Source: Octopus sinensis | Taxonomy: Eukaryota | Assembly: GCF_006345805.1 (NCBI RefSeq) | Contig: NC_043022.1 | Span: forward strand, 310,001-374,000 | Length of the DNA: 64,000 nt | Direction: 5' to 3' | In this document: positions 2,197-23,977 of the stretch, piece by piece | Layout of the letters: each line of letters opens with the position of its first letter | Position numbering within the stretch: position 1 is the stretch's first letter | Notes under the pieces: model-generated | Told to the model about the DNA's origin: nothing | What the model saw: the letters and a program-made list of their open reading frames with translations, nothing else | Databases searched by the model: none | Translations under genes and position numbers: made by a program

Positions 2197-2459
2197 ATGA
2201 AGAAGCTTGTCTTTTTCTTACTTATTTTCGTTGTTGTTCTTTGGGAAACTGAAGGACAGTTGGTAACTGGGGGGAAGCCTTTGGTGTCGGGAGGACTGCC
2301 AGTGGGTAATGAAGAAGAGATTGTGACCGCAAAACCTTTAGAGGATGAAGAAGTTTCCGAGAGTGAAGATGTGTCAGTGACTGAAGCTCGACCGTCTCAT
2401 GATGCAGATGCAGGTAACTCAACATCGGAAGGGGAACGTCTTGCTGCGTCGCCAACTAA
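2197..2459 (+). CDS. EMI-EGF secreted protein exon 1: signal peptide (MKKLVFFLLIFVVVLWETEG) + acidic pro-region
   Basis: gccATG context; hydrophobic N-terminus; donor AA|GTGAGT at 2459/2460 (phase 2) fits phase-2 exon 5011. Confidence 0.75.
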
Positions 2460-3499
2460 GTGAGTCATTCTTTCATTCCACCCGATCTAACCTCGCAATC
2501 TACCCCGTGGGTACCTTTTGTACTGTCTGTTCTGTTATTCAAAATTTGCACTAAATATACGGTCTGGGGATTGTTAACGTTTTAGTCAAGATGGAGGACC
2601 TGAGCCGATAACACTTTACGGGACTTATAAGATTGATGGGAAGGAAGGACCCTAACCTTAAAGCTGGCAACAGAACATACTCAATGTACCTTAGTTACCC
2701 CAGTATTTATAATGCCATGATGAGGCACTTACAGAGACGGGAGAGAGAGACAGGCCATTGGACTCCTTATTTTTAGCCATTTATGAACACTGTCCTCATC
2801 AAATTCAGTTTGTATGTCCCACGAGGGTGTGACCAAATCTGTCTTTTGGTGTCATGAGTACAGCTTAAAATCCTTTTTCTTGAGTACGCACTCTTTGTGG
2901 TAAGGCAATTTGACGTCTATTTCTAGCGTATAAGAATCCACTTTAGTGGTCATTCACCTATTAATTGTAATACAATTTTTAAATCTTCAGATTTTTTTAA
3001 TATGATAGACCACTGGTTTAAATTGATGTTAATTGATTGATATCAAGTTCTACCCTCAGTATTTTAATTTAAAATAGCAATATTCTAAAACCAGTGAATT
3101 AACTGCGGAAATTTATTATCTGCTTGGGTTGTTTTCCGGCACTAGTGCGCCAAAATGAACACATTTGAAAAATACCACAAATATATTTTGTAGAACTGTG
3201 CAAGAGTTTTCTTTCGGGAAAACGTTTTTGTGTATAGTTCTGTATAATATGTTTTGAAATACGACAGACTACGCTGAGGATTTACAGATACTAGCATCTT
3301 GCATTTTGTAAGCATTAATAATGAAATCATGGTACAAAGGTAATCGTTTTATTTTGTCAATTTTCGTTTGCCTTTGGTTATTTTTTTACATTTTGACGTT
3401 TGCTGGTTTTTTTCTTGAGAACACACTCTTTGTGGTAAGGCGATTTGACGTCTATTTCTAGCGTATAGGAATCCACTTTAGTGGTCATTACTCTTATCA

Positions 3500-3690
3500 C
3501 TTATATATGATAGATCGGTAGCCACTACACACATTTTTTCTCTCCTTGTTTTTTTCTGTGTCCCTTTCTGTAGAAGAGCGTACGCTCGAAACATAAAAGA
3601 CTTTTTCAATTCCAGAGCGTAATACTAATACATCTGTTTGTTTTCTACACCACCTGTCTTCGTCTTTTATTGTTGTTTTTTTCGTGAACT
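3500..3690 (+). mobile_element. Penelope-like element terminal repeat fragment with hammerhead-like motif
   Basis: ctttCTGTAGAAgagc-gtac-gctcGAAACataaaag at 3564-3599, followed by (TA)n. Confidence 0.45.
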
Positions 3691-3705
3691 CTCGTTATAT
3701 ATATT

Positions 3706-3771
<66 letters not shown>

Positions 3772-4317
3772 CGTATCTATGTATGATGCCTATATATTTA
3801 TAAAGAGATTGCCTTTCATCCTTACAGGGTCGACAAATTAAGTACCAGTTACGCACTGGGGTCAATGTAATCGACTTAGTACCTTTGTCTGTCCTTGTGT
3901 GTCCCCTCTATGTTTAGCCCCTTGTGGGTAATAAAGAAATACATATATAAAGAGAGACAGAGACAGACAGACACACTGACTGATTGACAGACAGACAGAC
4001 AGACACACTGACTGATGCAGATATGGCTGTAGAATACAGATCTATGTGTCCGTCTCTCACTTGTATACGTGTGCTTCTCTCACTACCTCTACCTGTTTTT
4101 CTCTCTAGACACGAAAGCAAATGTGAGATTGAAGACGGGTGTTACATAAAAGAAACAAGAGACTCGCCGCACCCCTGCTTCCTCTCTGTCTGTGTCTCAC
4201 ACTCCATGTCTCTGTATCTCTCACTATAACCCCTCCTTCTCTCTCTTTCTCTAGTTGTATATGCGTGTCTCACTCACTACCTGAACCTCTTTTTCTCTCC
4301 TTCGAAAAAATTCATGA

Positions 4318-4635
4318 GGCGCAGGAGTGGCTGTGTGGCAAGTAGCTTGCTTATCAACCACATGGTTCCGGGTTCAGTCCCACTGCGTGGCATCTTGGGC
4401 AAGTGTCTTCTACTATAGCCTTGTGAGTGGATTTGGTAGACGGAAACTGAAAGAAGCCCGTCGTATATATGTATATATATATATATATGTGTTTGTGTGT
4501 GTGTTTGTGTGTCTGTGTTTGTGCTCCCTAGCATTGCTTGACAACCGATGCTGGTCTGTTTACGTCGCCGTCACTTAGCGGTTCGACAAAAGAGAACGAT
4601 AGAATAAGTACTGGGCTTACAAAGAATATGTTCTT
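4318..4635 (+). mobile_element. tRNA-head SINE family A (gcaggagtggctgtgtgg...gggttcagtccc); other copies 18566-18745(+), 23499-23915(+), 32658-32992(-), 48930-49160(-), 56040-56195(-)
   Basis: Multiple near-identical copies in the window; box A/B-like motifs; internal (TA)/(TG) tract. Confidence 0.8.
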
Positions 4636-4686
4636 TTCGTAACATATTTCTACTACATATATATATATATATATATAATACAATGT

Positions 4687-21202: not shown

Positions 21203-21318
21203 ATATAAACGAGTGTAAATATAGAGGGCGCTTAACCATATATGTATCAATTCTCCCGGATCTTATGTTTGCCCTTGTCGAAAGGGCTTTGAATTATTTA
21301 ATAATCATTGTTGCGTTG
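21203..21318 (+). pseudogene. Disrupted cbEGF exon (DINECKYRGR[fs]NHICINSPGSYVCPCRKGFELFNNHCCV)
   Basis: 116 nt (sister exons 117); 1-nt frameshift near 21232; donor reads ATAAGT instead of GTAAGT. Confidence 0.8.
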
Positions 21319-21859
21319 ATAAGTTAATCCTTTCAATATATTTTAATACACACACACACACACACAACACACACACACAAGTACACAAATTCATCGTCTT
21401 CAATACCAACTTGAACAGCATCTCCTCCGTCCAGCAATCTATTATCAGAAAGCCCACTATCTCTTCCTTCTGATTTGTTTTTGCTATCTTTGATCCTAAA
21501 GGAGCCTTCTGTTTATACTCACAAATCTGTGCATTCTTCGCCCTATTCAGGCCATGCAAGGTTACTGTTTCTCCATTGTAATGTAACGTTACCATTACAT
21601 CAAAAGCCACCCACCTCCGTGCAGGCTTTGAACGTACTAAAATTTTCTTTAGTCCACATTTAATATATAGGAGGAAAAATACTCCACAGCTTTAGCAAGA
21701 TATGTCTGGATATTGAAAGAAACCACAACGCAACATAGCATCAAGTGGAGACTGCTAGAGAAGTGCAGACCTTCCAGTATATCAGTGGTAGGTGCAGTCT
21801 CTATATAACACATGAACGAAGTATATAGAATGAATCCGTTAGCCCAGGGACATACCATC

Positions 21860-21947
21860 AACGTAATTATAAAATCATCTGGTTGGCTAGGCATAGATAT
21901 ATGAATCGGTTCTGCCTATATTCACGTATATTTTTCCATATATATAA

Positions 21948-21997
<50 letters not shown>

Positions 21998-23466
21998 AAA
22001 AAAATAGATGAACATCAATGGAATTTGTATCTTTGTGGTACCAGTGCCGGTGGCACACAAGAGAAAACCATCCGAAAGTGGCCGTAGCCAGTACCGCATC
22101 GACTGGCCTCCGTGCTGTGGGCACATGACAAACACCATCCGATCGTGGCCGTTCGCCAGCCTCATCTAGCACCTGTGTCGGTGGCACATAAAAACACCAT
22201 CCGAAGACCCGGCAAGACTAGTCAGGCCATAACCCATGGCCCCTACCTGGGACGTAGTCAGTCCACCTGTGCATACCTTCCTTCTTGTGACACTTGTGAA
22301 GACCTGTTGAGGCAAGTGAAAATCAAAATCAAAATCAAAACAAATCAAAATAGATGAACATCAATGGAATCTGTATCTTTGTGGTACCAGTGCCGGTGGC
22401 ACACAAGAGAACCATCCGAACGTGTCCGTAGCCAGTTCCGCATTGACCGGCCTCCGTGCTGTGGGCACGTAACAAACACCATCCGATCATGGCCGTTCAC
22501 CAGCCTCATCTGGCACCTGTGTCGGTGGCACATAAAAACACCTTCCGAAGACCCGGCAAGACTAGTCAGTCCACCTGTGCATACCTTCCTCTTGTGACAC
22601 CTGTGAAGACCGGTTGAGGCAAGTGAAAATCAAATCAAATCAAATCAAATCAAAATAGACAAATAGATGAACATCAATGGAATTTGTATCTTGTGGTACC
22701 AGTGCCTGTGGCACACAAGAAATCCATCAGTGCTGTAGTCAGTGCGGTGGGCACATGACAAACCCCATCCAATCGTGGCCGTTCGCCAGCCTCGTCTAGC
22801 ACCTGTGTCGGTGGCACATAAAAACACCATCCGAAGACCCGGCAAGACTAGTCAGGCCATAACCCATGGCCCCTACCTGGGACGTAGTCAGTCCACCTGT
22901 GCATACCTTCCTTCTTGTGACACTTGTGAAGACCTGTTGAGGCAAGTGAAAATCAAATCAAAACAAATCAAAATAGATGAACATCAATGGAATTTGTATC
23001 CTTGTGGTACCAGTGCCGGTGGTACGTGGCACACAAGAAAACCATCCGAACGTGGCCGTAGCCAGTACCGCATCGACTGGCCTCTGTGCTGTGGGCACGT
23101 AACAAGCACCATCCGATCGTGGCCGTTTTGCCAGCCTCATCTGGCACCTGTGTCGGTGGCACATAAAAACACCATCCGAGCGTGGCCGTCTGCCAGCCTC
23201 GTCTGGCACCTGTGTCGGTGGCACATAAAAACACCATCCGAGCGTGGCCGTTTTGCCAGCCTCGTCTGGCACCTGTGTCGGTGGCACATAAAATCACCCA
23301 CTACACTCTCGGAGTGGTTGGCGTTAGGAAGGGCATCCAGCTGTAGAAACACTGCCAGATCTGACTGGACTGGTGCAGCTTTCGGGCTCCCCAGACCCCA
23401 GTTGAACCGTCCAACCCATGCTAGCATGGAAAGCGGACGTTAAATGATGATGATGATGATGATGAT
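21860..23466 (-). repeat. Family-D element expanded into a tandem array (~4 x 310-345-bp units plus 3 x ~64-bp subrepeats)
   Basis: aaatagatgaacatcaatggaat.tgtatc recurs at ~22003, 22348, 22661, 22971. Confidence 0.88.
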
Positions 23467-23960
23467 ATATATATATATGTAGGCGCGTATACATATATGC
23501 ACAGGAGTGGCTGTGTAGTAAGTAGCTTGCTTACCAACCACATGGTTCTGGGTTAAGTCCCACTGCGTGGCACCTTGGGCAAGTGTCTTCTACTATAGCC
23601 TCGGGCTAACCAAAGCCTTATGAGTGGATTTGGTAGACGGAAACTGAAAGAAGTCCGTCGTATATATGTATATATATATTTATGTTTGTGTGTGTATATG
23701 TTTGTGTGTCTGTGTTTGTCCCTCCAACATCGCTTGACAACCAATGCTGGTGTGTTTACGTCCCCGTAACTTAGCGGTACGGCAAGAGAGACCGATAGAA
23801 TAAGTACTAGGCTGACAAAGAATAAGTCCTAAGGTCAATTTGCTCGACTAAAGGCGGTGTTCCAGCATGGCCACAGTCAAATGACTGAAACAAGTAAAAG
23901 AGTAAAGAGTAAGAGATTATATATTTGCTTTATGTTTGTTTATTTTCTCCCTTTTTTCAG

Positions 23961-23977
23961 GCATTGGCACCATCTGA
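23961..23977 (+). CDS. Probable terminal coding exon of EMI-EGF gene: (G)IGTI-stop
   Basis: ttttctcccttttttcag| acceptor; phase-1 frame gives GC ATT GGC ACC ATC TGA; AATAAA at 24001-24010 and 24425-24430. Confidence 0.55.

Follow-up and report, generated by a model that had tools for sequence, protein, structure and literature searches.

A predicted secreted protein of Octopus sinensis with a basic eight-cysteine module and calcium-binding EGF domains, and the exon history of its gene

Calcium-binding EGF (cbEGF) domains form arrays in fibrillin, Notch and the fibulins, for example, where Ca2+ at each DxNEC interface makes the rod stiff for contacts with extracellular proteins. The EMI domain, which comprises ~70-80 residues with 6-7 Cys, is joined to a non-calcium EGF, a cbEGF and a C-terminal coiled-coil region in vertebrate EGFL7 and EGFL8. 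In Nimrod proteins, a CCxGY motif precedes EGF-like repeats with the NIM consensus CxPxCxxxCxNGxCxxPxxCxCxxGY (PMC4073527). Here we describe an eight-exon gene in a 64-kb stretch of Octopus sinensis DNA, referred to throughout as the window, whose position 1 corresponds to position 310001 of the annotated locus sequence CM016884.1 (GCA_006345805.1). The gene is already annotated, and its product is probably secreted and Ca2+-binding, an adaptor or matrix-type protein from a family specific to Octopus. Literature searches found no paper on the gene or its family.

Gene structure and protein layout

An earlier note on this DNA, made from the letters alone, had proposed eight small exons with chained phases (Table 1), and a splicing script verified the coordinates, splice sites, phases and open frame. 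The joined exons give 918 stop-free nt encoding 305 aa with GIGTI-stop at the C-terminus. The incoming exon phases are 0,2,2,1,1,1,1,1, all internal borders have the form AG-exon-GT, and the sequence at each border of the internal exons shows a pyrimidine tract and AG upstream and a donor of the GTAAG/GTGAG type downstream.

A protein search with the 305-aa product retrieved the O. sinensis RefSeq protein XP_029651374.2 (227 aa, E=8e-150), named 'latent-transforming growth factor beta-binding protein 2-like isoform X2', and isoform X1 (XP_036369591.1, 266 aa) falls into the same 90% cluster. The coding sequence of X1 at CM016884.1:312197-333977 (21,781 bp) corresponds to window 2197-23977 with the same start and stop, and over the gene and the preceding 2,196 nt the annotated sequence agrees with the window at every base. 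X1 consists of exons 1-6 and 8, and X2 of exons 1-4, 6 and 8. Residue for residue, seven of the eight exons are identical to these two proteins, the exception being exon 7. Because neither isoform has exon 7, the exact 305-aa product was absent from a collection of 15 billion sequences. The locus is thus an annotated, expressed-type O. sinensis gene with RefSeq isoforms X1 and X2. It had been described as hidden, which the RefSeq model with its same start and stop contradicts, and as invisible in the open reading frame track, which is correct for a bacterial-style track only. The junction 19783/23961 lacks support from transcripts, as does exon 7 itself; the junction annotated in RefSeq, 18317/23961, bypasses this exon. 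The four EGF domains proposed for the product are present in the spliced frame, but that of exon 7 is in no annotated isoform.

The protein begins with a signal peptide in exon 1 (MKKLVFFLLIFVVVLWETEG, followed by Q), whose cleavage site (...TEG/Q) is conserved across the family. This N-terminal segment is the sole hydrophobic stretch; in agreement with the earlier note, no transmembrane segment was found after it, the maximum Kyte-Doolittle value over 19-residue windows being 0.42. The spacer that follows in exon 1 is acidic (15 D/E versus 4 K/R in residues 21-87) and disordered, and carries an N-glycosylation site by sequence consensus (N74). At the border between spacer and eight-cysteine module stands a KR pair. 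This dibasic site is missing in the relatives P0004 (O. vulgaris) and P0122 (O. bimaculoides XP_014783437.1), so that processing at KR is not a family rule. The remaining parts named in the earlier note, the eight-cysteine segment with CCKGW, four DINEC repeats and the GIGTI-stop, are also all present.

The EGF part was confirmed by the proposed profile check, in which Pfam EGF_CA (PF07645) matched four stretches with 92 bits against a cut-off of 27 (E=2e-26); cEGF and EGF_3 matched as well. The cbEGF regular expression D-x-[DN]-E-C...C-x-[DN]-x4-[FY] also matches four times. Given this E value and the RefSeq identity, the eight-exon chain is far beyond chance. The EGFs had been described as four-cysteine domains, which holds for exons 5 and 6, whereas the normal six cysteines are present in exons 4 and 7. 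Alignment to a paralogue showed that exons 5 and 6 are without C2 and C4. The canonical EGF disulfides are C1-C3, C2-C4 and C5-C6, and both partners of one disulfide have therefore been lost. Furthermore, each EGF is encoded by one phase 1-1 exon, so that exon skipping alters the length of the rod while the frame is kept.

An AlphaFold2 model of isoform X1, in which exon 7 is not included, was built from a 45-sequence alignment and had a mean predicted local distance difference test (pLDDT) score of 76. Residues 20-77 scored below 50 and are disordered, the module scored 80-85 with a long predicted beta-hairpin (90-109 / 112-131), and the EGFs, both four-cysteine domains included, scored 86-96. 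In Foldseek searches, three EGFs superposed on Notch1 EGF11-13 (target-normalised template modelling score 0.72, root-mean-square deviation 3.0 Å, 31% identity), and further matches were to the cbEGF rods of NELL, uromodulin, EMR2/CD97 and fibrillin. Foldseek with the full-length X1 model returned no structural neighbour for the module. An AlphaFold model of the module and EGF1 from six sequences reached a pLDDT of 57, and its Foldseek matches were meaningless.

With a conventional EGF part and a gene already in RefSeq, the locus has little weight as a discovery. When the product and five family proteins served as tblastn queries, no additional family exon turned up in the window past 21320; hence the window holds neither a second family gene nor an additional coding exon of the family.

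Table 1. Exons and associated features of the gene, in window coordinates.
Feature	Position	Strand	Description
Exon 1	2197..2459	+	Start codon, signal peptide, acidic spacer; ends in phase 2; identical to RefSeq
Exon 2	5011..5100	+	First half of basic eight-cysteine module (KR/TCKVSC...CKWGTCIRY); in both RefSeq isoforms
Exon 3	9378..9454	+	Second half of module; contains the CCKGWTGVPGRC motif
Exon 4	17232..17351	+	Six-cysteine calcium-binding EGF, phase 1-1, with Asx-hydroxylation consensus
Exon 5	17652..17768	+	Four-cysteine calcium-binding EGF without C2 and C4; cassette, in X1 and skipped in X2
Exon 6	18201..18317	+	Tandem duplicate of exon 5; constitutive (X1 and X2)
Exon 7	19667..19783	+	Intact six-cysteine calcium-binding EGF with O-fucose consensus; in neither RefSeq isoform
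Exon 8	23961..23977	+	Terminal micro-exon, (G)IGTI-stop
Candidate poly(A) signal	24001..24010	+	Two overlapping AATAAA, 24 nt past the stop; chance-level frequency in AT-rich DNA
Dead EGF exon relic, intron 3	12261..12309	+	3' half of an EGF exon; equals paralogue EGF1; tblastn
Dead EGF exon relic, intron 7	21203..21318	+	Equals paralogue EGF5; tblastn and alignment to paralogue

The eight-cysteine module and the EMI domain

The module (residues 88-143) has 56 residues with 8 Cys, is strongly basic (17 K/R versus 1 D/E) and ends CCKGWxGxxxxC. In an alignment of four family members, C7 C11 C30 C44 C47 C48 C58, Y17 Y33 Y37 and G50 W51 were invariant. The C-terminal motif of EMI type, CC-x-G-[YWF]-x-G...C after a Y-x3-Y stretch, is present and also invariant in the family. 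When the module profile was run against 1.84 billion representative proteins, it matched P0001, P0002, P0006, P0121 and P0122, together with two low-complexity false matches. Four of the five true matches are named proteins of O. sinensis, O. vulgaris or O. bimaculoides. Among named proteins the profile thus matches only Octopus, which bears out the earlier description of the protein as lineage-specific. The features described above likewise support a small secreted protein with calcium-binding EGF repeats.

The same segment had been called an EMI domain, and this assignment was not borne out. Pfam EMI (PF07546) gave no match at E<=1 with the whole protein and none at E<=10 with the isolated module of four members, and it appears in none of the precomputed Pfam lists of the family. 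EMI membership therefore comes out negative in the one curated test available. With its 8 Cys in 56 residues, the module also lies outside the size and cysteine count given above for EMI. The module profile matched no PDB sequence, and an EMILIN-1 EMI sequence matched no PDB chain. In a weak test, with mammalian EGFL7 alone on the EMI side as both profile-building searches returned nothing broader, hhalign aligned the module to the human EGFL7 EMI region with a probability of 39.8% and to 12 mammalian EGFL7 sequences with a probability of 26.9%, over 27 columns only in each case; the identity to EGFL7 EMI is 41%. Database proteins confirm the human query at 100% identity. The aligned columns span C-x2-Y...Y...CCxGW, the C-terminal half of the module.

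That the module is nevertheless a true but compacted EMI domain, and the protein a divergent EMI+EGF member (EGFL7/8-like, or Nimrod-like with CCxGY), is possible but doubtful. This is a claim of ancestry, under which the protein would bind matrix enzymes or receptors or serve as a bridge in phagocytosis, and it is compatible with an adaptor or matrix-type function. The location of the module between signal peptide and EGFs and the invariant C-x2-Y-x3-Y...CC-x-G-W-x-G...C pattern are what such an origin would leave, and it is this half of the module that hhalign pairs with EGFL7 EMI; the CCxGY motif of Nimrod proteins, N-terminal to EGF-like repeats, offers a parallel. The EMI origin is opposed by the Pfam result and the size and cysteine count, and the module profile search retrieved no EMI protein of any other animal. 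Moreover, the repeats are cbEGF rather than NIM, and a coiled-coil tail of EGFL7 type is missing. From the alignments, the likeness to EMI appears to be a real resemblance at the level of motifs, with homology unproven. The analysis thus flags an Octopus-restricted, cationic, cysteine-rich module with a possible relation to EMI.

In a separate observation, exon 3 and ~45 nt of intron on each side of it are conserved between paralogues and species much above the EGF exons (window 9330-9500; L003 7572-7740; L001 19800-19975, where L003 is the O. sinensis paralogue locus and L001 the O. bimaculoides locus). Gene conversion, or an element that controls splicing, could be the cause.

Exon history and possible function

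The O. sinensis paralogue P0007 ('fibulin-1-like') is located at CM016884.1:166547-179942 on the same strand, ~132 kb upstream. Its locus holds six cbEGF exons and a CCxGW exon upstream of the RefSeq start. The RefSeq model of P0007 (242 aa) is apparently truncated at the N-terminus, with the CCxGW exon (L003 7657-7671) and a complete first EGF exon (L003 9906-10023) upstream of its start. Among the sequences searched, the family is confined to Octopus, and it is clustered on one chromosome.

The two loci are collinear. Exon 4 corresponds to EGF2 of the paralogue, exons 5 and 6 together to EGF3 and exon 7 to EGF4, and the relics in introns 3 and 7 take the places of EGF1 and EGF5. Of EGF1 only the 3' half is left (YCVCNSGYTMGQHECV, then gtttgt), the 5' half being degraded. 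In the EGF5 relic, a 1-nt deletion removes both the C2 codon and an open frame, and AT stands in place of the donor GT. The ratio of nonsynonymous to synonymous substitution rates (dN/dS) of this relic against the paralogue is 0.18, which indicates that constraint acted on the exon through most of its history and that its death came late. The constitutive exon 4, compared with paralogue EGF2, gave a dN/dS of 0.14 and is thus under constraint. Exons 5 and 6 lie in a tandem unit (17589-17790 / 18138-18339; 202 bp, 95% identical, period 549 bp) and show four differences, three non-synonymous and one synonymous. As both are without C2 and C4, loss of the disulfide preceded the duplication.

O. bimaculoides XP_014783437.1, with GIG-stop at its end, has a homologous terminal micro-exon with a homologous acceptor, and no micro-exon of GIG type was found in the long paralogue. 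The short C-terminus may thus either predate the split of O. sinensis and O. bimaculoides or be shared within a subfamily. In a synteny comparison of the window with the O. bimaculoides locus, the flanks shared only repeats, which leaves orthology of the two genes unproven. Relative to the longer paralogue from which it derives, the gene has thus lost two EGF exons, doubled another, given up the C2-C4 disulfide there and adopted a short terminal exon.

Exon 7 has 39 codons, six Cys, DINEC, the C-x-N-x4-Y-x-C-x-C consensus and AG/GT borders. Its acceptor tract is interrupted (ttctaaaattcag), and a similar tract is found at the homologous exon of the paralogue, which is used. The dN/dS against paralogue EGF4 was 0.72 on ~24 synonymous sites, too few to decide. 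Either exon 7 is a cassette that is rarely spliced in, or it was silenced recently.

The two dead EGF exons, the unused exon 7 with its dN/dS value and the disulfide gone from exons 5 and 6 would also suit a decaying duplicate on its way to a pseudogene, in which case the RefSeq models would represent residual transcription without function. The O. vulgaris orthologue, which was not found in the protein collection searched, would fit such decay as well. However, the frame is open through eight exons with consensus at all splice sites, the dN/dS of exon 4 is low, and all eight module cysteines are retained. Both partners of the disulfide were lost together, in a domain that still models at pLDDT >86, and the terminal micro-exon is conserved across species. 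We therefore consider decay very improbable.

By analogy with other cbEGF proteins, we favor a secreted Ca2+-binding adaptor or matrix-type protein. From N- to C-terminus, this small glycoprotein would consist of the signal peptide, a disordered acidic spacer, the compact basic eight-cysteine module, a rigid rod with two to three cbEGFs, or possibly four, and a five-residue tail. Judged by composition, the cationic, disulfide-rich hairpin may form a binding head for an anionic or protein partner outside the cell, and the acidic spacer may mask this head or be removed. The Ca2+-stiffened EGF rod would serve as spacer and interaction surface, with splicing tuning its length. Several points weigh against this function. 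It is assigned by analogy, and the module has a dN/dS of ~1.0 against the O. bimaculoides relative (34 synonymous sites; all eight Cys kept), a value more in keeping with a fast-evolving effector than with a housekeeping matrix protein; exon 4 against its O. bimaculoides counterpart gave 0.30. The dead exons, the unused exon 7 and the lost disulfide could also mean relaxed constraint, and the O. vulgaris orthologue missing from the collection counts here too.

The dN/dS of the module, with all eight cysteines fixed, would also suit a different reading, namely that the protein is a fast-evolving secreted effector, acting in immune recognition or as an opsonin, in saliva or venom, or in reproduction. 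The active part would be the cationic cysteine-rich module, possibly freed from an anionic pro-piece at KR. The order of acidic pro-region, KR and basic cysteine-rich region is consistent with this, as are the lineage-restricted, tandemly clustered family and the rapid turnover of its EGF exon content. The ratio, however, comes from few synonymous sites in a comparison for which orthology is unproven, the dibasic site is missing in P0004 and P0122, and the literature searches gave no tissue or proteome evidence. An effector of this kind is accordingly unlikely, though less so than decay. More speculative, and rather improbable, is that the module is not an EMI domain but a new one born in Octopus, whose surface evolves on a fixed disulfide scaffold at a neutral or higher rate, and that the clustered family would supply octopus-specific extracellular recognition or defence effectors whose reach is adjusted as EGF exons are gained, lost or skipped.

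Whatever the function of the probable adaptor or matrix-type protein, the gene provides a compact, datable case of modular evolution of phase 1-1 exons, in which a single locus combines a pair of dead exons, a fresh duplication, an optional exon and the joint loss of both cysteines of a disulfide.

Other features of the window and comparison with known systems

Intron 3 of the gene contains three broken sense-strand open reading frames of a non-LTR retrotransposon (14475-16752, + strand; N- and C-terminal parts of RVT_1, and zf-RVT). A dispersed repeat of ~190 bp occurs twice (7852-8039 and 19212-19401), with several more copies in the O. bimaculoides locus; the part at 19290-19400 has a tRNA-derived look on the minus strand, and ARAGORN calls no tRNA there. 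Just 3' of the gene lie ~1 kb of (ATGT)n (24488-25445) and a 39-bp / 231-bp tandem array of 16 copies (26204-26823). Further downstream, a 4.7-kb satellite (AGGAAAGAATA)n with ~432 copies and 92% match extends over 39115-43831; its plus strand is pure purine, with a GC skew of up to 1.0. On the minus strand, three long open exons (57557-58582, 58944-60074 and 61963-62925; 341, 376 and 320 aa) are heptad-rich, rich in E, K, L and Q, and coiled-coil-like, and match no Pfam family. These exons are probably part of a separate large gene. In O. bimaculoides, the gene downstream of the relative (L001 35867-37215) encodes a 712-aa product with Peptidase_M4 domains of thermolysin type, a family that is uncommon in animals.

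The closest relatives are the Octopus paralogues, P0007 of O. sinensis and the O. vulgaris proteins P0002, P0003, P0004 and P0006 (named 'fibulin-1-like' or 'wall 2-like'). These share with the present gene the signal peptide, the acidic spacer with GNST..GESL, the eight-cysteine CCxGW module, the phase-1 cbEGF exons and the order of the EGFs. Unlike this gene, they have 5-7 six-cysteine EGFs and a longer C-terminal tail, whereas here EGF1 and EGF5 are lost, EGF3 is duplicated and lacks a disulfide, and the protein ends in a five-residue micro-exon. The O. bimaculoides protein XP_014783437.1, automatically named 'adhesion GPCR E2', has the same short layout, terminal micro-exon and collinear exons 1-4, but only two EGFs, both with six cysteines, and a module identity of 40%.

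Among families outside Octopus, fibulin, EFEMP1, LTBP and fibrillin share tandem cbEGFs, the best non-octopus sequence matches are of this kind, and the cbEGF rods of fibrillin and Notch match the model EGFs in structure. The Pfam scan found no TB/8-Cys domain (PF00683), fibulin C-terminal module (PF22914) or anaphylatoxin domain in the protein. The lack of PF00683 among the cbEGFs speaks against an LTBP or fibrillin identity, the LTBP2-like name in RefSeq being due to EGF similarity. A fibulin or EFEMP identity is not supported either, as PF22914, present in the vertebrate fibulin/EFEMP matches, is absent from a protein that ends five residues past its last EGF. The analysis thus corrects the automatic names, in that the protein is not an LTBP, fibulin or adhesion GPCR.

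The NimB proteins of Drosophila and Anopheles share the signal peptide, CCxG[YW] before EGF-like repeats, secretion and clustered genes (PMC4073527, PMC8419693). However, the repeats here are DxNEC calcium-binding EGFs, and neither a strict nor a relaxed NIM consensus matched the protein. The proposed likeness to Nimrod and Eater fails on this consensus, and membership of the Nimrod superfamily is not supported. Like EGFL7 and EGFL8, the protein is small and secreted, with an N-terminal basic cysteine-rich domain ending CCxGW and then EGFs that include calcium-binding ones. In contrast to them, its EGFs are all cbEGFs, nothing follows GIGTI and an acidic spacer precedes the module. Pfam EMI is unmatched, and the similarity of the module to theirs is weak and confined to its C-terminal half. 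Membership of the EMI, Nimrod, LTBP or fibulin family is thus not demonstrable for the protein, as for each of them features that define the family were looked for and not found. By analogy, its mode of action would resemble that of EGFL7, NimB and other small secreted proteins that combine EMI or CCxGY with EGFs, and also that of short cbEGF proteins of fibulin type.

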